Assembly: GCA_950097015.1 (NCBI GenBank) | Contig: CATNEN010000001.1 | Span: 8,494,001 to 8,558,000, forward strand | Length of the DNA: 64,000 nucleotides | Direction of reading: 5' to 3' | Source: Macrostomum hystrix | Taxonomy: Eukaryota > Animalia > Platyhelminthes | Shown here: positions 1 to 15,500 of the stretch, piece after piece | How positions within the stretch are numbered: the stretch's first letter is position 1 | Layout of the letters: every line of letters starts with the position of its first letter | Notes under the pieces: model-generated | The model's database searches: none | What the model saw: only the letters and a program-made list of their open reading frames with translations | Told to the model about the DNA's origin: nothing | Translations under genes and position numbers: made by a program

Positions 1-3000
1 TGCGTAGTGTCTGCCGCGGCAGGCACGGTAGCACTTGGCCAGGCTCATGGCTCCGGTGCTGGCTAGAACCGGCAGGTCGCGGCTGCCGTTGTCAACGTAG
101 CATCCGATGAAACGCAGGCCAGGGGCTAGGCAGAGAATTAAGATGAGTTATGACACTGGAGTTAAACTCGATCTGTTTAGCAGAAGACGTCTCGAAATAA
201 GAATAATTTCAGGAAAATTCACTTGGATCAACTGGTCTGGGCAGTCCAGTGGAGAAGACGATGTTTCTCCAGCCAGCGCCGCAGAAGGCGGAGCTGTCAC
301 CGCTGCATCGCATGTTGCACTCGCTGTTGGCCCTGGCACCATAGCGACCGTAGCTATTTCCGCACCAGCACTCGTTGCTGTACTGCAGACCAAAGTAGGC
401 ATAGCGGCGGCGCCTGCACTCGCGATAGCACTTGTAGACACTCATGGATCCGCTGGAGCCCAGTACTGGAAGGTCTCGACTTGCTGAGTCGACAAAGCAG
501 CCGATTCTGCGAAGACCAGGAGCTGGAAGAGAAGCAAGTACCCCCCGATTTTAACGGTAGAACTACCAAGAGGAGTAATTCCCTCCTGACAATGACAGTT
601 TTTGTGCTGCACCCGAACGGAACGGAATAATGCAGGCACACGAAAGTCATGAACACCGGCCAACTTTTCTTTGCGCATCTTCTGAAACAATAATCAAGTA
701 GCCAGCTCTTCAGACCGCTGAGTTATTCAATGCTTCTGGCCGAAAGTCAGATTTTTTCAATAAGCGCTAGTGTATTTTATCCACCCCTAAACACGAAATC
801 GAGCTACACCTCAGTGCGGACTTGCGGGGTTTTGAGAATTTACCAACATGTCACCCGAATGTGCCAGAATCATCTCCGTCTTCGGTGGTCAACGATCTAG
901 ACGGACTGCTGAACCTTTAAGGGCTACAACAGGTGGAACCTATGGACACCTAGGAACCTATGAACCTATGCAACTATGGATACCATTAACATTAATTTCT
1001 CCAATTTCCTTGATCAAGCCTAAATATTTGGCGCAGCTCAACCACAGGACACCCTCGCCAAGTCTGGCAACCAATCAGTCACAACCCTACGCTGTTAGCA
1101 TTCGGGCGCTGTCAAAAAAGTTTCAGGGGGGATTTCCACTCAAAAACTTGATATAAAAACGGGCGGCAAAATAGCTTGGTAGTCCTACGAGTACTATTAA
1201 GCAAGATTCTGTTAAAAACATGAAACTACGAGTAGAAATTAAGCTAACTTTCCATCGACTTCGATACTATAACATTCTCAGACAAAACTGATGCCCACTT
1301 ACTGAGCCTCTCAGCCACACAGATTCGTCGGTTGATTGTTCGGCATCCACAGTCTAAAAACAGAACGAAACATTGAAAATTAATAAAATACGAGTATTGA
1401 GTTCATCAGGTGTTTAAGTTACATATATTGATTAGAATACTTACGTCCTCGCAGAGTATTGTCCAGTGCGTGAGAGTTGGCTGGGAAAGCACTAAAACTC
1501 ATCTTGCCATTAACGGCTCGCTTCACGAACTCCATCAGCTGTTTATAAATGGTTGCAAGCAAAGTTTAATAAAATACGTTTAGCGAGAACTAATCGGCTA
1601 ATCGAAATAACTCAAGAACACACTAAGATCAAGGCTCGGCCCACCTTGTTAAATATTGACGAAGCCAGACGGCTAACTTGTCCATTTGAGTCCCTGGCGA
1701 GCTGGTCAAACTGCTTTGTGCCAACGCCGCACATGTTGCCACTGCCTACGAAGAACAAACGGATATGCTTTGCGTGCAGCTTAGAGGCCACTACGCTACG
1801 CAGGTGTGCGTCCTTCGCAGATGCGTCAGTAAAAAGCATCATGACGGAATTAGGATCTGCAACATCAGCAGCGTCGCGAGCTCCTGACATGGCGAACTCG
1901 GGACAGTCGCCACCGCCGCTGGCGACAAGACGGTCGAGGAATCGCCTGACCTCGGCAGCGTTGGTGGTCTTAAGCACATTTCTAACGTAGGGATCACCGA
2001 AAGTGGCAATCACGTAGTTTTTGAATCGGCGGTTGGACATCAGAATGTTGCGGATATTGTCCTTCACCGACTTAATAACGCGGCCCATGCTACCGGTGGT
2101 GTCGATGACGAAAATCAGAGAGCCGAGGCGCCTCTCCTCAGGGGCCGGCACACAGGAGCAGGTTCGACGACGGATGAACTTCGCCTTGGTTCCAGCCGGG
2201 CATTCTGTGAAAAAATGCGAATTGAAATTAGCCCATTGCACAACTTTGCGAAGACAAGGCGGGAGACAATACTTACTTGACAATGGCTTGCGCACTGGGA
2301 GACCAGTAGTGTAGATGCTGTTTCTCCAGCTCGATCCGCAGAATCTGGACTTGTTGCCGTCGCACCTCATTCTGCACTCGTTGTTCGACCTCCTTCCATA
2401 GCGACCGTAGCTGTTGCCGCACCAGCACTCTCTGCTGTACTGCAGACCAAAGTACGCGTAGCCCCTGGCTCTGCACAGTCGGTAGCACTTGCTGACCTTC
2501 ATGGAGCCAGATCCAGCAAGCACTGGCAGGTCGCGAGTGTTGTTGTCGACGAAGCAGCCGACGAACCTCAGTCCAGGAGCTGAAACGAAATTGGAATGCC
2601 CGACCATCTGTTCGTGAGCTTTTCTCCGTGCCATAATCTTTGCTTTTTCTGTGTCCAGAATGTAATTTAACAATACAATTTCGTAACGTACTGGCTGGCC
2701 TCGGTGTTGGTCTGACGTAGTGTCCGTTGACCTGCACTTCGCACAGAGTCAGTGGGACGTAGTTCCTCGTCTCGATGCGCACGGTTCGTCCGACCAGGTT
2801 GCAGGAGAATGTCCGCACGGAGAAGGCTGTGGATGACCTGTAGGAGGCGCACACACGACCGTCAACCTTGATGACAAAGTCGTTGAGTCGGTCAGCACAA
2901 CAGTCCTGTCGGTTGTGGATGGTGATCGATGTGATTCTGGCCCGTCTGCTGGTCTTTGCCTGCCACCAGGCACCTCTGGCAGTGTTTGTGTGAGTGCAGG

Positions 3001-6000
3001 AGTTGTGGAAGTAGCGCTGATCGGTGTTGCCGTCGATGGCTCTTGAGCAGGGTCCTCCCCAGGCGGTGGAGTGCTGAGAGCAGCCTGACAGAGGCAGCTT
3101 GGCTGGAATATCACAATTTGAGTGATAATCAGTTTTACCAAATACAGTTGCAACCCTTCGTCAGCAAAATGTTTTTAAATGAATGACGACTAGTAGAAAT
3201 GAGGAGAACAAAATACAAAAAAACACAAACTAAAGGTTCAGTAAATAATCAGTTTGTCATTAAGCAAGCACCACAAGGTTTCGTCCAGATTATACGCTCG
3301 TAAGCGAATATGAATCGAAGAATTTGGAAAGAATATTATTAGTAGAAAATGACAAAGGACATAAAAATTTAAACACTACTACATCACAACATTTAATGTA
3401 GGTAGAGACTCAGTGTCTCAAAATATCAACAGCGGCTCACCGTCGGCTGGCCTTCGAACGATAAGACCGGTGGCATAGATGCTGTTTCTCCAGCTCGATC
3501 CGCAGAATCTGGACTTGTTGCCGTCGCACCTCATTCTGCACTCGTTGTTCGACCTCCTTCCGTAGCGACCGTAGCTGTTGCCGCACCAGCACTCTCTGCT
3601 GTACTGCAGACCGAAGTACGCGTAGCCCCTGGCTCTGCACAGTCGGTAGCACTTGCTGACCTTCATGGAGCCAGATCCAGCAAGCACTGGCAGGTCGCGA
3701 GTGTTGTTGTCGACGAAGCAGCCGACGAACCTCAGTCCAGGAGCTGAAACGAAATTGGAATGCCCGACCATCTGTTCGTGAGCTTTTCTCCGTGCCATAA
3801 TCTTTGCTTTTTCTGTGTCCAGAATGTAATTTAACAATACAATTTCGTAACGTACTGGCTGGCCTCGGTGTTGGTCTGACGTAGTGTCCGTTGACCTGCA
3901 CTTCGCACAGAGTCAGTGGGACGTAGTTCCTCGTCTCGATGCGCACGGTTCGTCCGACCAGGTTGCAGGAGAATGTCCGCACGGAGAAGGCTGTGGATGA
4001 CCTGTAGGAGGCGCACACACGACCGTCAACCTTGATGACAAAGTCGTTGAGTCGGTCAGCACAACAGTCCTGTCGGTTGTGGATGGTGATCGATGTGATT
4101 CTGGCCCGTCGGCTGGTCTTTGCCTGCCACCAGGCACCTCTGGCAGTGTTTGTGTGAGTGCAGGAGTTGTGGAAGTAGCGCTGATCGGTGTTGCCGTCGA
4201 TGGCTCTTGAGCAGGGTCCTCCCCAAGCGGTGGAGTGCTGAGAGCAGCGCGACAGAGGCAACTTGGCTGGAATATTGAACAGTTTTTTGTTTTTTAGTCT
4301 TTGGTCTTCAACTTTTAAGTCTAGAGTTACCTTTAGTCGTCCTGCAAAAGAAAAACAGTGAATTGTGCTGACCTGATTCAACTCTGATGCAAGTGTTCCG
4401 GTTGATATATCGGCATCTACATTCTGTGGTATGTTCAACGGTGGTATTTTTGCGATTTACTGTGAAATTTTATTTAGGCTTTAAATAAAGCTTTGAAGCT
4501 CAAGAAGCTTACGTCCTTGCAAGACTCGCTTCAGTGCTGCTGCATCCACTGGGAAGGCGCTGAAGCTGAGTCGTCCATTGGCAGCCCGCTTTACGAATTC
4601 CATTAGCTGTATTGTTTAATTGGGAATATCGATATCAGTATTTCATTATTGTGCTGTATTTATTATATATAATCGAAACTGCAACGCCTGTTTTGATAAC
4701 AGCACTCTTTAAAGCATTCCTAAATATAAAACATTTTATTATTATTAGTTTTTTAAATAAATAATAAATATTTTGATTCGTACAATATAAGCTGCCCTAC
4801 CTTGTTGAAGTGAGCGGAACGCAGGCTAGCAACGTAGCCGCCTGAGCTGCGTGCCAGGGCATCGAACTGTCCAATGCCTCGGCCGCACAGGTTTCCGCTG
4901 GCCACAGCATAGAACCTGATGCCCTTCGCCTTCAGCTTGGCTTCAACTCGACTGCTCAGGTGAGCATCCTTGGCAGAAGCGTCAGTGAACAGCATCATCA
5001 CGGAGTTGGGATCAGCGATATCAGCGGCATCGAGTGCGCCCGACATGGCCATCTCCGGACAGTCGCCGCCTCCAGATGCTCGCAGGCGGTTGAGGAACGC
5101 GACCACCTCGTGGACGTTTGTGGTCTTTTTCAGGTTTCTTTCGTAGGGGTCCCCGAATGTGGCGACGACGTAGTTGTTGAAGCGCGTGTTGGCAGCCAGA
5201 ATCATGCGGATGTTATTCCTCACGGCGTTGATCACGCCGCCCATGCTGCCAGTAATGTCGATGACGAAGACGAGGGAGCCCAGTCTCCTCTCCTCGGGGG
5301 CAGGTGTGCAAGAGCAGGTCCGTCGAGAGATTTTTTTCGGCCGTGTGCCCGCGGGGCATCCTTGGTGTGAATGTGAGAGTTTTGAGCAATAGGATAGGAC
5401 AAAAACCAAAAACTTAAGGTATGCCTGTTTCTGTTAAGGTGAGTTTTTGGAAATACTGAAATTTTCCGATTATTAGGACCAAAGAAAACCTCATGGAAAT
5501 ATAATAATCTGCCAAATGCAGTGAATAAAATGGCTTCCTATTGACCAACAAGCGACGAGCGTATGTACTAACCATTCATCATAAAAGGACGAAAAACGCT
5601 ACACCATACTTCTAAATGAATAAGTCAGCGATAGTTATGAAATCTGTGTTATAAAGGTATACTTACTTAGAGGAGGTCGTCCACCACTGCCACCACTGGC
5701 ACCGCCGTTGCCGCCAACTCGAAGACCGGTGGCGTAGACGCTGTTTCTCCAGCTCGATCCGCAGAATCTGGACTTGTTGCCGTCGCACCTCATGTTGCAC
5801 TCGCCACTGCTTCTGCTGCCATAGCGACCGTAGCTGTTGCCGCACCAGCACTCTCTGCTGTACTGCAGACCGAAGTACGCGTAGCCCCTGGCTCTGCACA
5901 GCTGGTAGCACTTGCTGACCTTCATGGAGCCAGATCCAGCAAGCACTGGCAAGTCGCGAGTGTTGTTGTCAACGAAGCAGCCAATGAACCTCAGTCCTGG

Positions 6001-9000
6001 AGTTGCTGCATTTTTAGGGCTTAGCTAAAACGGTGCTTGTTCAAATTGCAAAAACGTGTAAAATAAAAATGGACTTACGTTTTCTAGCAGCAACACATGT
6101 GCGTCGATTGATGTTACGACACCCACAATCTGAAAAATTATAAAATAAATTTTCATGCGTTTTCTTTACTCAGCTATCAAGTAAGTTCCATTAGCAGGAA
6201 TAGCTATTAAAAACTCCAAGAAAACCAAATACCACTCACGTCCACGAAGAACACGATTCAAAGCGTGAGCGTTGGCGGGGAAAGCGCTGAAGGTCAGGCG
6301 GCCGTTTGCAGCGCGTTTCACGAACTCCATCAGCTGGGGAATAAGGAAGACCCATCGCTAAAGTGAGCAACTCAGCATGATTTAACATTATTATCTAGCT
6401 GCAACCCGTTAATATGCTTTCTTGGACAGTAGGAAACTAAATCTTAAACGGAAATTCACGACACTATTCAGATGTTTACGACAAAAACATGTAGCAATGC
6501 TTAGAGGTCCCTTCAGGTGGTACTTGACAGGGCGGTCAATTTGTTTGCCTCTCGCACCAAGGTTCCTGAGCTCGATTCCGGGCGAGGCCACATTTATTTG
6601 GGGCGCAGCCGCGGAGAGAAGGCTTGGGGGCTTGTCGTGCAATTTACGCCCTTAAAGGCCAACCTCTAAGGCACAGTGAGAGTGTACACTGCCTGACGAT
6701 GAGAAAGTCAGGGCAGCTGTACACACCTGTACGAGCGTTTGCCTGCGTACAGTATCTGTGTGCGTATCTGTGTGCTCAGAAGTCAGCGAAATGGGCCAAA
6801 TTGCCTCCTCGCTGGCTGCGGGTCTAGTCTCACAAAATGACGCGCCATTGCCCGAAGCCCTCCTGCAAATATTATTATAAGAGTTGCCCTACCTTGTTGA
6901 AGTGAGCGGAGCGCAGGCTAGCAACGTAGCCGCCTGAGCTGCGTGCCAGGACTCCGAACTGTCCAGTGCCTCGGCCGCACAAGTTTCCGCTGGCCACAGC
7001 ATAGAACCTGATGCCCTTCGCCTTCAGCTTGGCTTCAACTCGACTGCTCAGGTGAGCATCCTTGGCAGAAGCGTCAGTGAACAGCATCATCACGGAGTTG
7101 GGATCAGCGATATCAGCGGCATCGAGTGCGCCCGACATGGCCATCTCCGGACAGTCGCCGCCTCCAGATGCTCGCAGGCGGTTGAGGAACGCGACCACCT
7201 CGTGGACGTTTGTGGTCTTTTTCAGGTTTCTTTCGTAGGGGTCCCCGAATGTGGCGACGACGTAGTTGTTGAAGCGCGTGTTGGCAGCCAGAATCATGCG
7301 GATGTTGTTCCTCACGGCGTTGATCACGCTGCCCATGCTGCCAGTAATGTCGATGACGAAGACGAGGGAGCCCAGTCTCCTCTCCTCGGGGGCAGGTGTG
7401 CAAGAGCAGGTGTGCCGAGAGATCCATTTTGCTCTGGTGCCAGATGGACAAGACAACGAGCCGGCTGAATGGGAGAGAAGCGAAAACATGGGAATGTTTT
7501 GCAAATTAACTTATTATCCAATGTAGGTTCTGATTTCACGCAAACATGAAATTTTCGTGTTTTTGTGATTACTATCTTACACCTAAATCGAATAGGAACG
7601 AACTTAACAAAAATAAAATTACTTGGTGGACGAGGTGGCCTATATCCGCCGCCAACCCGCAGTCCGGTGGTGTAGATGCTGTTTCTCCAGCTCGATCCGC
7701 AGAATCGCGAGCGGTTGCCGTCGCATCTCATTCTGCACTCGCCGTTCGACCTGCTGCCATAGCGACCGTAGCTGTTGCCGCACCAGCACTCTCTGCTGTA
7801 CTGCAGACCGAAGTACGCGTAGCCCCTGGCTCTGCACAGCTGGTAGCACTTGCTGGCTCTCATGCCACCGGTTCCTGCCAACACTGGTAGGTCACGCGAG
7901 CTGTTGTCGATGAAGCAGCCAATGTATCTCATACCTGGGGCTGTTGTATTGAGAGGGAAGTCTTCAAGTCGCTGTCCAAGGACTATCAGGACCTTACTGA
8001 AGCGATTTTATCTTTATGATAATTACGCGACTATCTCAAACTAATTCGTATTTATACTAGTAGTGTCCCTAAGTAGTCATTAGTTCGTTTTTAGGTCGTT
8101 TTTTATCCGCAGTTCTTAATAAAAACCGATTTAGGAAGAGCATCTGAAAGTTAAAATCTTACTTCGAGGTCGTCGTCCGCCAACCCGCAGTCCGGTGGTG
8201 TAGATGCTGTTTCTCCAGCTCGATCCGCAGAATCGTGAGCGGTTGCCGTCGCATCTCATTCTGCACTCGCCGTTCGACCTGCTGCCATAGCGACCGTAGC
8301 TGTTGCCGCACCAGCACTCTCTGCTGTACTGCAGACCGAAGTACGCGTAGCCCCTGGCTCTGCACAGCTGGTAGCACTTGCTGGCTCTCATGCCACCGGT
8401 TCCTGCCAACACTGGCAGGTCACGCGAGCTGTTGTCGATGAAGCAGCCAATGTACCGCATACCTGGTGCTGTTTTTCGTCAGATACCATTGGAAAGTGCA
8501 GATTATTCATAGGGTTTGAATACTTCTTTCTTTGAAACATGGATCTCCTTAACTTACTCCTTTGCCTGCGGCTTGGGCTGGGTCTGGTCCAGACGCGCCT
8601 TCTGCGTCGGCCCCATCGTCGGATTGTCCTGTGAACCTTTCGAGCGGCTCGCCTAACCGGTCGTGACCACCGCCGGACATGACGTCGTACAGGTCTGGAC
8701 CAGCGACGAACATGCCGGACATGACGTCGTACAGGTCTGGACCAACGACGAACATGCCGGACATGACGTCGTACAGGTCTGGACCAGCGACGAACATGCC
8801 GGACATGACGTCGTACAGGTCTGGACCAACGACGAACATGTCGCCGAACAGGGCTGGTCCATCGCCTCCTGCCCCAACGGGCGTCAGCTAAAATGAATAA
8901 ATCAATAGAATAGACTATTTTAATCGCTGATGAAGGAATCGCCTTTGAGTATTTTATCGTCTTTAGTACTTTGTCTTTTCGTCTAATAACTTTGAATCTT

Positions 9001-9070
9001 TCGAAAGCTTACCCATCGTCAGAGCGCAGACGAAGCAGACCGCCAGAAGCAACCAGGCGATCTTGCCCAT
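1..9070 (-). CDS. Secreted mosaic lectin/adhesion-like protein (3' end outside window): SP - Arg/Trp/His repeat - WSC - WSC - vWA - Cys linker - WSC - vWA - FTP - WSC - FTP - WSC - vWA - Cys linker - WSC - WSC(partial)
   Basis: Phase-consistent GT-AG exons derived manually: 9070-9013, 8887-8558, 8468-8163, 7940-7623, 7464-6893, 6333-6240, 6129-6079, 6005-5667, 5360-4801, 4606-4513, 4266-3856, 3743-3441, 3102-2692, 2579-2277, 2204-1645, 1538-1445, 1353-1303, 522-223, 125-1. N-terminus MGKIAWLLLAVCFVCALTMADA is a typical signal peptide. WSC motif GCFxD...C..C...Y.YFGLQY..ECWCGN...C...C.G....CG. vWA with D[TI]TGSM, GGGDCPE and FTDA. F-type lectin with AIDGN and H-x26-R-x-D-x4-R. Confidence 0.9.
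2692..3102 (-). CDS. F-type (fucolectin/FTP) lectin domain exon, copy 2
   Basis: Near-identical copy of 3856-4266 at an offset of 1164 bp, with the same splice sites. Confidence 0.9.
3856..4266 (-). CDS. F-type (fucolectin/FTP) lectin domain exon, copy 1
   Basis: CSQHSTAWGGPCSRAIDGN...CTHT...WW...NRQDCCADRL...LTLCEVQV. Exactly 26 residues separate His and Arg of the fucose-binding motif. Confidence 0.9.
6508..6878 (+). mobile_element. tRNA-derived SINE, family A (intronic copy)
   Basis: Degenerate tRNA-like head with B-box-like gagctcgattcc (6568-6579). Body shared with 19438-19668 and 34340-34610. (ATT)n-like tail. Confidence 0.7.
6893..7464 (-). CDS. Hemicentin/VWA7-type vWA domain exon (further copies at 4801-5360 and 1645-2204)
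   Basis: LVFVIDITGSM, FGDP, GGGDCPEMAM, FTDASAKD and SSGG motifs match the hemicentin N-terminal vWA pattern. Each copy is completed by a 94-bp exon beginning LMEFVKRA. Confidence 0.85.
8558..8887 (-). CDS. Exon 2 of the mosaic gene: polycationic Arg/Trp/His-rich repeat segment
   Basis: Acceptor ttttag at 8889-8888, donor gtaagt at 8557. Phase 1-1, in frame with exon 1 and the WSC exon at 8468. Translation: ADARWGRRRWTSPVRR(HVRRWSRPVRRHVR)x4RWSRPVRRAARKVHRTIRRWGRRRRRVWTRPSPSRRQR. This frame has no start codon and is missing from the ORF track. Confidence 0.85.
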
Positions 9071-9204
9071 GACTGCAAGTCAGAAGTATACGCTAATCTG
9101 CTTCTAGAATAGATCTTGTAGCGTCAAGCAAATTCTCCTCAATCAACCGCAGCTGAATAAGGAGGATCCCGAGTTGGCCTCGGTAGCGCCGGAACACCGG
9201 TCCG

Positions 9205-9210
9205 TTTATA
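9205..9210 (-). promoter_or_regulatory. Candidate TATA box of the mosaic gene
   Basis: TATAAA on the minus strand about 135 bp upstream of the ATG at 9070, in a GC-richer proximal region. Confidence 0.4.
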
Positions 9211-11337
9211 TCGACATGCAGTCGGTTGGGATCTGCTGACAGAAGCGGAGGCCTGGGCGGGGGTTGCCAGGCTGTTGTCTTCTCGCATAGCATCGGTGCG
9301 CCGTGTCAGCTTTGAGGCTCCGTTTCGCATCTGGTGCTCAGCGACACACCGTCCTTCCCCCACCCCACCCTAGCTTGGGCGAGAGCAGGCAGGACCAAAG
9401 TGAGAAAAAACATTAAATCGATGGTTGGAATTTGCCAGTTTTTTTACTAAAAAAATTCTTTTTGTAAAATGTTGAAAGTATTCGACGCTCGACTAAACCA
9501 TGCGAGAAATTCAATAGGAGCTGTACTGCCTTTCAAGTAGGAGAAGTCGACGCTTAGTCGCCAAGTCCTGCTTTCGGTTGACTCGCTGCTTATCGGAGGG
9601 CGAGGAGCCGAGGTTGCTGGGCTGGGAGGTGAGGGTGTGGGCGACAAGGCTTCTTCCTTGTGCCTATAACAGGCATACAATAGCCCCAATAGAGAGGCTC
9701 CGAATGTCTCGCTAAACACATGGCAGCTCATTGCCCTCACAATATCCCATTATCCCAGCCAAAGCCTCGGAGCCAAGTTGAGATCGAAGATCTCAGTCAA
9801 TCCAGCGCACCTCTCCACCACTAAGAACCGGTTTGAACCAGTTCTTCTTGCTCTTTCCTCCTGCTAGCAAGCAAGCGCAGTATGCAGTCAGATTTGCTGT
9901 CTTCTCGGCCTGAGGTGAAGAGCTACAAAGCAAACAATAGATCTTTTCCCGTCGCATCATCTGCCATCTGTCGCAGGAACTGCTCTATCGAAACTGTTTG
10001 CCTCTGAAAGTTTTTTTGGCCTCTCCCAGTGAAAGCAGAAGGCTAATAACTACACTGTGTCATTGTGGTCTGACACGAAGCACTGAATTTCTGAGCAAAT
10101 TTTGGAAAATTAAAAAAGAAAAATAAGCTAAAAATAGAATGCTCATTCATTATTTGCAATCTCGATGCTGATATGTTAATAGCGTCTAGGAAAAGAGAAC
10201 GGCACTGTATTCTTTTTGTTTGTTTATTTTTAATCGAACGCAACAAGTTGTACAATTGTACAGGTCAGTGCTTACTTATCGATCCAAGGCAGATAATACT
10301 CAAAGCAGACAGCAAAAGGATGCTCAGAAAAGTAATCAATAGGAAAAAGTTTCAAATAAAAACAACGAATTCAAGAGAAAGAGGCGACATGTCTTAAGAA
10401 AAACAACTGGAAAAAAACTTGAAATTGTTGTGTCAAAATTAAGCTGGGTCTTGGTAGATCGGAAGATGCGAAAACTAATTATGTAACGAGTTAAAAAGAT
10501 GCAAGTCATAAATGATGACATGATGAATTGTTCTTGAAATTGCGTTTCCAAATTTGAACTCAACTTAACACGACAGAAGGACGGAAATGTATAATTAATT
10601 AGCTTTATTTGTAACTTTAATAAGTAAAATTGAGGAGTCAAAGACTATTTGGATAAAAAGTTTGTGTTTTTTAGTCATAATTAAAATGCACTTATAAAAT
10701 AAGTTCAACAGTCAAACTATTAAATAAAAGTTCAATGGCACAAATTATTTAAATAGATTTCGTTTGCATTCAAAACTGACAAAGACCTAACAACCTAGAA
10801 GTGCTTATAGTTAAACAAAAAATAAGCACTTAATAATTCATGTCTTTGTACTAAATTAATTGTTGTTCAAAAATACCGAAATAATTAAACTTAAAATAAG
10901 TTGGAATGCTTAAAAGAGTGTTTCTAATTCATGTAGAACAACACTTTATTAGCTACCATTGAAACAGTTTAAAAATATGTAAAAGCCAATAAAATGGTTA
11001 AACTGTGTAGAGAAATTTGAACTACATTAAAAGTTGATCATGATAGGAAAAATTAAGGGAATTAAATAATTAAAATGAGTTCAGTGAGTTAACATCTAAG
11101 TGCCCGGCACAAACAATAGATTGACTGAAAAGTTTTACAGATTATCTGCATTATGATACTACTCGTACATTAACAAGCATAAAAGCTGTTAGCATATAAA
11201 TAAATACCCGATGAAAACGATTCTACATGACTTTAAAAAGTCATTAGAGAAAGCGTGAGTCATTAGAAAAAAATTTGAGCCAATAGAATAGTTTTTGAGT
11301 CATTTTGAGTAGGATTTGAGTCATTAGAGAAGTGTTG

Positions 11338-12571: not shown

Positions 12572-15500
12572 TCAATGCACGCCCATCAGATTAATGCTGG
12601 AGCCGGATGACCGTCTGATAATGTCACGCTTCAAGTGTTTGTGCAGTCTAGAGGACAATTTGTGCAACGTCTTGGCAGCTTTGACAGCGTCTGTCAGATC
12701 TAGCTGCGATTGAGTCCGGCCGACGGGATAATAGTCCGGCTGTGGGAAAAGTTTTCAGGGTAAATCTGCTGTTAGGAATTAGGCATAAATTTAACACATT
12801 CCTTTTAGGATAAAATTAATAGAGGCTTATGACTTCTACGTAGATATCGATAATGACTTCAGGGTAGATCGTGACTTCAGGGTAGCTAATGACTTCAGGA
12901 TAGCTAATGACTTCAGGGTAGATAATGACTTCAGGGTAGATAATGACTTCAGGGTAGCTAATGACTTCAGGGTAGCTAATGACTTCAGGGTAGCTAATGA
13001 CTTCAGGGTAGCTAATGACTTTAGGGTAGCTAATGACTTCAGGGTAGCTAATGACTTTAGGGTAGCTAATGACTTCAGGGAAGATCGTGACTTCAGTGTG
13101 AAGAATAACTTCAGGGTAGATCGTGGCTTCATGGTAGATAATAACTTCAGATCGTGACTTCAGGGTAGCTAATGACTTCAGGGAGATAATGACTTCAGTG
13201 TAGACAATAACTTAAGGGTAGATCGTGACTTCAGGTAGATAGCGACTTCAGGGTTAGATAGTGACTTCAGGGTAAATAAAGATAATTAATACTGGGCAGA
13301 CTTCAGGACTTCAGGCCAGTGAGTTTAAACCAACCTGAAATCCACCGCTACTGGCATAACCAACGCCGCTGTCAGCTTCGTAGATGTAAAACTCCTGCGT
13401 AGGCTGCGGCGGCGGCGGCGGCTGAGGAGGAAGACCGTAACCAACTCTACCGTAGGCCCTCCTCCGACCATTGCTGGCTGCAAGAGAGCTGACGCTGGCA
13501 ACACGGCGAAGCGACGAAGCGTCAGCTGGACCAGTCTCGGTCACAATGTAGCGTCGGAGCGGCTGCGGCGGTTCTACGTTGTACACGCGCTCCCTAGGAG
13601 GAGCAAAGCTGTTAAAAAGGAATATGATTAAATAGTAGTAGACAAATCAGCTGAGCCCTGAGCTCACACTCACACTGGGGTGTAAAGCTGATCTGACTTT
13701 CTTATCATCAAGCTTGGGGATCAGAATCTGATGTACACAAGCTTTGGGATCAGAATCTGATGTACACAAGCTTTGAGATTACAATCTGATGTACACAAGC
13801 TTTGGGATCAGAATCTGATGTACACAAGCTTTGGGATCAGAATCTGATGTACACAAGCTTTGGGATCAGAATCTGATGTACACAAGCTTTGGGATCAGAA
13901 TCTGATGTACACAAGCTTTGGGATCAGAATCTGATGTACACAAGATTTGAGATTACAATCTGATGTACACAAGCTTTGGGATCAGAATCTGATGTACACA
14001 AGCTTTGGGATCAGAATCTGATGTACACAAGCTTTGGGATCAGAATCTGATGTACACAAGCTTTGGGATCACAATCTGATGTACACAAGCTTTGGGATCA
14101 GAATCTGATGTACACAAGCTTTGGGATCAGAATCTGATGTACACAAGCTTTGGGATCAGAATCTGATGTACACAAGCTTTGGGATCAGAATCTGATGTAC
14201 ACAAGCTTTGGGATCACATTCTGATGTACACAAGCTTTGGGATCAGAATCTGATGTACACAAGCTTGGGGATCAGAATCTGATGTACACAAGCTTTGGGA
14301 TCAGAATCTGATGTACACAAGCTTTGGGATCAGAATCTGATGTACACAAGCTTTGGGATCAGAATCTGATGTACACAAGCTTTGGGATCACATTCTGATG
14401 TACACAAGCTTTGGGATCAGAATCTGATGTACACAAGCTTGGGGATCAGAATCTGATGTACACAAGCTTTGGGATCAGAATCTGATGTACACAAGCTTTG
14501 GGATCACAATCTGATGTACACAAGCTTTGGGATCACAATCTGATGTACACAAGCTTTGGGATCACATTCTGATGTACACAAGCTTTGGGATCACAATCTG
14601 CAATTTGGGATCGAATTTGGCACCAAAAGAATGTGGCCTCGCCGCGGATTCGAGCTCGGGTGCACCTTTCGTGTCTGTTACCTACAACTGATTTAGAGAA
14701 AATAAATAAAAAGAACTCACCCAGCCACGTGAGTTCTAAGGCCGTGCACAGCACGCATTGGACCAACTTTGGGATATCTGCAAGTCAGCAGGATTAGGCA
14801 AGCGAAATACTGTTAGCTCGCTAAGTTAACTTTGTTACAGGCTACCAACAAGCAAAAGTCTAAATTAGAAGGTTAAATTGTAAAGTTTGATCTAGAAGCA
14901 TGGCTTAAAGCCTAGTGGTTTGAGAGTCGGACTCACGACTTGGAGGTCGGGGGTTCGATTCCCGACTCCACTGGAAACTCTTAACTCTGCATTGCTCCAG
15001 TTCAGCCAGTTGTTAAATGGGTACCAGCATTAGCTGGCGTAATTGAGGGTGGGTGTGGCTTCCCCCCAGTCCATGGACTGAACAGCCGTACGCAGCCTTC
15101 AGATGCGCCGCGCAATAGCTGCGGTTGTTGGGGCAGGTGTAATCAATCAATAATCTAATTATCTAAAAAATGTAACAAAGGCGTGTCAAAATGTATCGTT
15201 ACTTCTTAGAGCGTTAATTTAAAAGCTTCAACGCTAGTTAATCGTTACTTTTTCAACGAGTCTAATTAGGACGCCAAATGAATGTTAGCATTTGTTGTTA
15301 AAACAAGCGACATTTTTTGTGATCACCAGTCTAGGTCACTCACCTTCCGAAACCGCCACCGACATGCTGCTGCTGCCGCTGCTGATACGGATAAGCCGGC
15401 GGCGGCGGTCTTGCAGAGCCAGCTGCCAGACAGGCCGACCGTCTGTGCGGCGTGCCCGGCTCGGCGCCGCATCCGGCGCAGACTCGATTCTCGAAGCTCA

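Follow-up and report, generated by a model that had tools for sequence, protein, structure and literature searches.

A stretch of 64,000 nucleotides of the Macrostomum hystrix genome (assembly GCA_950097015.1, contig CATNEN010000001.1, positions 8,494,001 to 8,558,000) was analysed, and is called the window, in which all positions below are counted unless stated otherwise. On its minus strand, the window carries a gene that begins with an exon for a putative signal peptide and continues into exons for WSC and VWA domains. Between the two parts lies an exon, at 8558-8887, for a strongly cationic, repetitive peptide segment (hereafter the head), which proved to be a true part of the coding sequence of this Macrostomum gene. 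The pattern of substitution among its repeat copies indicates that the repeated peptide motif, RW[S/T][S/R]PVRR, is under selection. By analogy with an adhesive protein of the same genus, we consider it moderately probable that the head acts on polyanions as a polycationic anchor or condensation module and stays on the protein.

The exon was read in the frame given by the splice phases of its neighbours, that is, exon 1 leaves off in phase 1, which is also the phase at which the first WSC exon begins, so that the latter requires one carried-over base. Exon 1 is translated from an ATG at 9070 into MGKIAWLLLAVCFVCALTM, followed by a G that is carried to the head exon; an in-frame TGA is located just upstream of this ATG (9082-9080), and no other ATG was found up to 9164. 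With this G included, the spliced reading of 8558-8887 gives 110 amino acid residues, starting with ADA|RWGRRRW (the bar marks the predicted signal cleavage site) and ending with RRQR. Among the 110 residues are 47 Arg, 16 Val, nine Trp (8%), nine His, eight Ser, and eight Pro, and the sole acidic residue is the D of ADA, ahead of the predicted cleavage site. The mature head left after cleavage at ADA|R would be 107 residues in length, of which 44% are Arg and only one is Lys. On the minus strand the exon is bordered by the acceptor TTTTAG|CT and the donor GGA|GTAAGT, and its content of guanine plus cytosine (GC) is 62%, compared with 60% for the WSC exon and 30% and 35% for the two flanking introns. 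An earlier reading of the DNA letters by themselves (the sequence-only reading) had proposed an exon of this kind, with 110 residues, about 47 Arg, nine Trp, and no acidic residue after ADA|R, set after the signal peptide and ending with RRQR directly ahead of the first WSC domain. The sequence and the splice phases bear out this structural reading throughout.

The mechanical list of open reading frames (ORFs) gives only two other frames at 8558-8887, as the sequence-only reading had pointed out, because the Arg frame contains no ATG, GTG, or TTG start. The head exon thus illustrates how phase 1-1 exons that are rich in Arg and lack a start codon may escape automatic ORF lists and gene predictors. 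A second frame, shifted by one base in the 3' direction from the Arg frame, is also open over all of 8558-8887 and corresponds to an acidic repeat (MFVVGPDLYDVMSG x4). For this acidic frame of 8558-8887, neither a splice phase nor a selection signal backs its use (pN/pS of about 2.5; for definition see below).

For the transcripts, four public runs from three studies, all in the form of contigs, were mapped to positions 3500-9400 of the window. The two junctions that had been proposed for a check on RNA, 9013/8887 and 8558/8468, are both present in these public transcript contigs. The junction 9013|8887 was found in run X5 (RNA from a sediment metatranscriptome), in which one contig lies on 9013-9138 plus 8840-8887 with zero mismatches. 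The habitat of M. hystrix is brackish water (PMC8621496), which fits this exact match in a sediment metatranscriptome. The joint 8468|8558 (CT..AC on the plus strand, corresponding to GT..AG on the minus strand) was present in contigs of runs X1 and X6, and contigs of run X6 also cover 9013-9164 and 8558-8701. Three further joints, 7940|8163, 7464|7623, and 6333|6893, were identified in transcript contigs. The contigs break inside the 42-bp repeat of the head exon, so the number of units comes from the genome and not from RNA, and the frequency of exon skipping is invisible in contigs. At position 9114, within the 5' untranslated region (UTR), a metatranscriptome contig carries a 3-base insertion (CTC) relative to the assembly, a natural polymorphism of the wild population. 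The positions of all these gene parts are listed in Table 1.

Table 1. Parts of the gene around the head exon of M. hystrix, in the direction of transcription
Feature	Position in the window	Strand	Remarks
Exon 1, 5' UTR (to at least 9164) and signal-peptide coding part	9013..9164	-	sequence, transcript contigs
Intron 1	8888..9012	-	125 nt, GT..AG, 30% GC; X5 contig joins 9013 to 8887
Head exon	8558..8887	-	330 nt, phase 1-1, 110 codons
Older diverged repeat copy, N-terminal side (RWTSPVRRHVR)	8832..8864	-	6 synonymous, 2 non-synonymous vs core
Core tandem repeat, 4 x 42 bp	8672..8840	-	eight heptads [H/P]-V-R-R-[W/H]-[S/V]-R
Older diverged repeat copy, C-terminal side (RWSRPVRR)	8649..8672	-	8 synonymous, 0 non-synonymous vs core
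Intron 2	8469..8557	-	89 nt, GT..AG, 35% GC; joint 8468|8558 in X1, X6
First WSC-domain exon	8163..8468	-	phase 1-1; PF01822, E = 5e-20; joints 8468|8558, 7940|8163
Second WSC-domain exon	7623..7940	-	phase 1-1; PF01822, E = 6e-20; joints 7940|8163, 7464|7623
VWA-domain exon	6893..7464	-	PF25106 (VWA_4), E = 4e-33; joints 7464|7623, 6333|6893
Linker exon (LMEFVKRAANGRL...)	6243..6333	-	joint 6333|6893

The four 42-bp units claimed for the head were recovered by Tandem Repeats Finder, which reported at 8672-8840 a period of 42 with 4.0 copies and 97% matches; the core is in reality an 84-bp unit present twice with 100% identity. Since the four central units are too similar to each other to inform a test of selection, the diverged copies on both flanks were compared with the core. 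The best ungapped register at the nucleotide level is the same as the protein register, so that the alignment of the copies was not forced by the protein. When both old copies were pooled, 14 synonymous and two non-synonymous differences were counted in the Arg frame, giving proportions of 0.82 per synonymous site (pS) and 0.05 per non-synonymous site (pN), with a pN/pS ratio of 0.06 (p = 9e-9 by Fisher's exact test of synonymous vs non-synonymous sites). The same differences read in the two other frames give a pN/pS of about 2.5 or run into a stop codon. The motif has thus been kept while the silent sites are saturated, which points to a selected protein sequence, more than a tolerated minisatellite, and the low pN/pS of the Arg frame settles the frame independently of splicing. 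The selection signature, together with the order of residues within the heptads, is what is new and testable about the head.

The alternative to be weighed against this signature is that the head represents a tolerated low-complexity insert, namely a coding minisatellite which grew within a permissive linker behind the signal peptide and does nothing specific except leave secretion unharmed. Such an insert could be very young or homogenised, as the four core units (97-100% identical) would suggest, and its phase 1-1 borders allow it to be skipped, that is, the reading frame would be preserved if the head exon were left out of the mRNA. A neutral insert, however, is not expected to keep an exact peptide motif in its old copies at saturated synonymous sites, nor to have an order of residues within the unit that is near-optimal for amphipathicity (p = 0.0006; see below), and we regard this alternative as very improbable.

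Relatives of the head were looked for in several collections, with exons searched singly and not as the joined spliced protein. A Pfam search identified no family for the head, including no antimicrobial peptide (AMP) family domain and no cathelin domain. No homologue was found among proteins of 60-190 amino acids. An HMMER search of 1.84 billion representative proteins of any length gave 28 matches, all of which are unrelated periodic repeats of the S-R-x-V-x-R type (for instance, phage-like FSRQVTRT arrays). The ESM Atlas returned no usable match, and the PDB only noise with E values above 0.1. Within its own genome (220,453,370 bases in 42 contigs), neither the DNA of the head exon nor exon 1 has a second copy. 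A protein search of the same genome with the head gave 143 weak matches; seven of these loci were translated, and all seven turned out to be translated minisatellites and were rejected as paralogs. The uniqueness of the head exon and exon 1 in the genome, the lack of a homologue in the 1.84 billion representative proteins, and the abundance in this genome of minisatellites whose translations weakly resemble the head are all in line with the tolerated insert described above.

The physical properties of the head were estimated from its predicted mature form. Its net charge after cleavage at ADA|R is about +49 at pH 7 and +56 at pH 5, and on a charge-hydropathy plot it falls far on the disordered side (mean hydropathy of 0.29 vs a boundary of 0.57). 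The hydrophobic moment of the core reaches its peak, 1.0, at 102.9 degrees (3.5 residues per turn). When projected on a helix, the six Arg of one unit are located within a single 100-degree arc, and Val, Trp, Val, and Val in the opposite arc. A shuffle test of the hydrophobic moment (z = 8.5) was rejected as too generous, because shuffling destroys the periodicity, and the units were permuted instead: a random order of the 14 residues reaches the value of the core in only 0.055% of cases.

The near-maximal helical amphipathicity is typical of helical AMPs and cell-penetrating peptides, and together with the spacing of basic residues it has to be weighed for a second alternative, a cleavable peptide cassette. 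In this case proprotein convertases would cut at RRQR and/or at the RR pairs to free Arg/Trp peptides, cationic and amphipathic, with the ability to kill microbes or to enter cells. Trimming by carboxypeptidase might also yield peptides of a few residues, for example WSRPV and HVRHV. The lectin array would serve only as a carrier or be activated by removal of the head. A total of 20 dibasic pairs are regularly spaced along the head, the WSRPV core has RR on either side in the old copies as well as in the young ones, and RRQR stands at the very end of the exon, directly ahead of the first WSC domain. In addition, Arg/Trp peptides and protamine are antimicrobial. Only two canonical RX[KR]R sites were found, however, both within a single stretch of five Arg, and the composition alone accounts for the 25 RxxR motifs, so that the furin-site (R-x-x-R) argument of the sequence-only reading is weak. 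Multi-peptide AMP precursors normally possess an acidic pro-piece or spacers between units, neither of which is present here, and the searches of Pfam, HMMER, the ESM Atlas, and PDB gave no AMP-family domain or homologue. Both the hydrophobic content (about 29%) and Trp (8%) are low for Arg/Trp AMPs, a giant of about 5,000 residues would be an unusual vehicle for a peptide part of 100 residues, and saline water weakens charge-driven killing. Taken together, the cassette is considered unlikely. With respect to the proposed resemblance to a tandem AMP precursor, the repeated units stand (four 14-residue units plus diverged copies), but the spacers, anionic pro-pieces, and defined processing sites of such precursors do not, the 20 RR pairs being embedded in a stretch that is cationic throughout.

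The head shares with indolicidin, tritrpticin, and Arg/Trp cell-penetrating peptides the chemistry of Arg plus Trp and a possible amphipathic structure induced at interfaces. Indolicidin and tritrpticin are, however, 13-residue peptides with 23-39% Trp that arise from precursors with a cathelin domain, whereas the head, with its 8% Trp, has no cathelin domain and no spacer and is contiguous with an apparently giant lectin-like protein. Membership among cathelicidin-type AMPs was rejected, since the cationic segment follows directly after the signal peptide with no cathelin pro-domain and with low Trp.

A third alternative treats the head as a lectin-delivered weapon or entry device. The array of WSC and F5/8C domains would bind target glycans, and the head would permeabilise or cross the membrane as an amphipathic helix, either attached or after being cut at RRQR/RR. 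The targets could be microbes or prey, or else tissue of the partner, as the species inseminates hypodermically. The chance of this reading is rated as slim; if true, it would represent a new class of lectin-guided, membrane-active polycation.

Temporary bioadhesion of Macrostomum is the best-understood reversible glue system, in which a polycation fused to glycan-binding domains is switched off by a secreted polyanion. Based on this system, the favoured reading of the head as a polyanion anchor or condensation module can be drawn as follows. Predicted signal cleavage at ADA|R would leave the 107 residues as the N-terminal head of a secreted protein, which would be disordered when free in solution. 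On a polyanion or at an interface, the head could form a helix that has its Arg residues all on one side and Val/Trp on the opposite side, and would bind sulfated or carboxylated glycans or other negative surfaces by a combination of electrostatic, cation-pi, and hydrophobic contacts. Such binding may pack the protein in secretory granules and/or tether the multivalent lectin array after secretion. The gene would then repeat the design principle of the glue with unrelated parts, i.e. an Arg/Val/Trp/His heptad head on a WSC/VWA/discoidin array, and its 14-residue unit would offer a compact, synthesisable module for tests of polyanion binding, coacervation, and induced helicity.

The experimental precedent for this reading is the cohesive glue protein Mlig-ap1, in which regions of Lys and Arg (KR regions), with isoelectric points above 14, flank lectin, vWD, and EGF domains (Wunderer et al. 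2019, PMC6410801). These KR regions bind negatively charged carbohydrates, heparin blocks the attachment of Macrostomum, and added Lys, Arg, or cationic peptide blocks its release (PMC6410801). Of the functional options offered by the sequence-only reading, the polycation for glue or mucus fits this only experimental precedent in the genus, and the antimicrobial precursor is left with no specific support. One trait of the flatworm adhesive polycations, a secreted and extremely cationic low-complexity repeat, is found in the head, with 44% Arg, a charge of about +49, and a signal-peptide-like exon 1.

The likeness to Mlig-ap1 is one of genus, signal peptide, and arrangement, that is, a cationic low-complexity repeat fused to carbohydrate- or protein-binding domains; by sequence, the head gave no related protein among the 1.84 billion representatives or the proteins of 60-190 amino acids. 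The cationic regions of Mlig-ap1 consist of Gly/Lys/Arg, exceed 3,600 amino acids, and lie on both sides of the core, whereas here a single head of 107 residues is made of Arg/Val/Trp/His heptads. The attached domains are also different, being C-type lectin, vWD, and EGF in Mlig-ap1 and WSC, VWA, and F5/8C here. In other flatworms ap3 (Mile-ap3/Tmed-ap3) is a separate cationic protein of G/R/K/H/S, and is likewise a secreted, signal-peptide-led polycation that includes His (PMC9229212). It was proposed that ap3 is masked by a negatively charged releasing substance and that its Lys residues are bound by kringle domains (PMC9229212). In contrast to the head, which has a single Lys and forms a small part of a domain-rich protein, ap3 is a stand-alone GRKHS low-complexity protein of about 3,700 amino acids, rich in Lys and without lectin domains (PMC9229212). 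Judged by its composition and by the searches, the head appears to belong to neither the ap1 nor the ap3 family, nor to any AMP family, and to be made of other parts within the flatworm kind of secreted polycation-plus-lectin proteins.

Fish protamines of the salmine type have a very high content of Arg broken by Ser, Pro, and Val, and bind polyanions such as DNA and heparin strongly. The head is like them in its high Arg interrupted by Ser/Pro/Val. Protamines are, however, small nuclear proteins without a signal peptide, Trp, His, heptad order, or extracellular domains. The identification of the head as a protamine was rejected, because its N-terminus is hydrophobic and of the signal type, it is spliced to WSC and VWA exons, and no match was found in PDB or among profiles.

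Several points weigh against the anchor or condensation module. The composition (Arg/Val/Trp/His) is unlike the Gly/Lys/Arg of the known glue regions, the head is short (107 residues vs 3,600 of the KR regions in Mlig-ap1), and no homology to ap1, ap3, or anything else came up in the searches. The near-identity of the four core units (97-100%) indicates recent expansion or homogenisation, and the number of units is possibly not selected. Regular RR pairs would also suit proteolytic processing. As to the helix, Pro in every second heptad speaks against a long continuous one. AlphaFold, run on the single sequence, predicted long helices (pLDDT of 69 and pTM of 0.33), which is weak evidence and was not counted alone. 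Given the Pro in every second heptad and the charge density, a free helix of the head is unlikely, and one induced on a polyanion or at an interface is plausible. The role of the head may equally lie in glue, mucus, rhabdites, shell gland, prostate, or immunity; positional RNA-seq tables exist for M. hystrix (PMC10468722).

A fourth alternative overlaps with the favoured anchor or condensation module and is inseparable from it by sequence data, that is, the head could be a pro-region for granule sorting or assembly, with a role only inside the cell. It would condense the giant together with an acidic partner in secretory vesicles, and be taken off or neutralised when the protein is released. 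Comparable pro-pieces and charge pairing exist in other secretory proteins that are densely packed. The position directly behind the signal peptide, the extreme charge, and the possible cleavage site RRQR at the end of the head all agree with such a role, and the dense core of Macrostomum adhesive vesicles depends on the cationic ap1 (PMC6410801). Such a pro-region is held to be quite unlikely.

The literature was searched for related WSC proteins, and in the library covered no paper ties Macrostomum to a WSC protein of this type. WSC is mentioned there once, for the M. lignano prostate-gland transcript RNA815_80.4, which encodes a secreted protein with a signal peptide followed by two WSC domains (Arbore et al. 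2015, PMC4490696). This transcript shows that WSC proteins are gland secretion products in Macrostomum (PMC4490696). From the start of its sequence, as judged by eye, RNA815_80.4 was rejected as an ortholog, being a small, AT-rich, and different WSC protein that shows no cationic head (PMC4490696). A literature search for a link to rhabdites or basic proteins gave nothing relevant.

The two WSC domains spliced to the head scored 71.9 bits (8164-8466) and 71.7 bits (7624-7938) in Pfam, compared with a gathering cut-off of 27.8. The linker exon is followed by a small Cys-rich exon, and the splice phases continue from there into the next WSC exon. Mapping by tblastn gave the following order of modules on the same strand: signal, head, WSC, WSC, VWA, linker, WSC, VWA, linker, F5/8C, WSC, F5/8C, WSC, VWA, and linker, beyond which lie about 30 more WSC exons and an additional F5/8C and VWA (one each). 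Altogether about 35 WSC exons are arranged head to tail on one strand over positions 1-9070 of the window and the adjoining 8,474,001-8,494,000 of genome contig 1, and most exons of the array have phase 1-1 borders and a length of 288-303 nt. The array extends at least 15.5 kb past the window start, with about 24.6 kb between the start codon and the last mapped exon. Apart from the head, no Arg-rich piece occurs in 32 kb. Transcript evidence joins the first six exons only. In view of the uniform strand and of the same module order in predicted M. lignano proteins (see below), the array is probably one giant secreted protein from a single gene, with approximately 35-40 WSC domains. If it is one gene, its array of about 35 WSC exons is, to our knowledge, among the largest WSC arrays. 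The head makes up about 2% of this apparent giant lectin-like protein of about 5,000 residues.

For the neighbouring modules, the closest proteins in the database all come from M. lignano (57-68% identity), and these predicted proteins of M. lignano are fragments with the same module order. Within the array, WSC and VWA are encoded by one uninterrupted ORF of 353 amino acids at 1612-2673 (minus strand), but by separate exons in the first two modules (7623-7940 and 6893-7464), indicating that an intron has apparently been lost. A pair of F5/8C and WSC is present in two nearly identical copies at 2273-3153 and 3437-4438 (minus strand), with 96% DNA identity for WSC and largely the same protein; from this similarity, the pair seems to be a product of recent tandem duplication or gene conversion within the array.

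Two kinds of repeats were also observed in and near the gene. The intron at 6334-6892 contains, at 6540-6850, an interspersed repeat of about 305 bp, for which a first look over the genome gave at least 1,809 candidates. Thirty-nine further copies were scored and are 89-92% identical, and the repeat is covered very deeply in contigs of the RNA runs, with many loose ends. A tRNA origin of this repeat, which resembles a short interspersed element (SINE), was rejected because ARAGORN finds no tRNA at 6540-6850. Three minisatellite arrays are located 2-5 kb upstream of the gene start, at 11164 to about 12300 (period of 20 bp, 52 copies), 12779-13192 (18 bp, 16 copies), and 13661-13979 (29 bp, seven copies).

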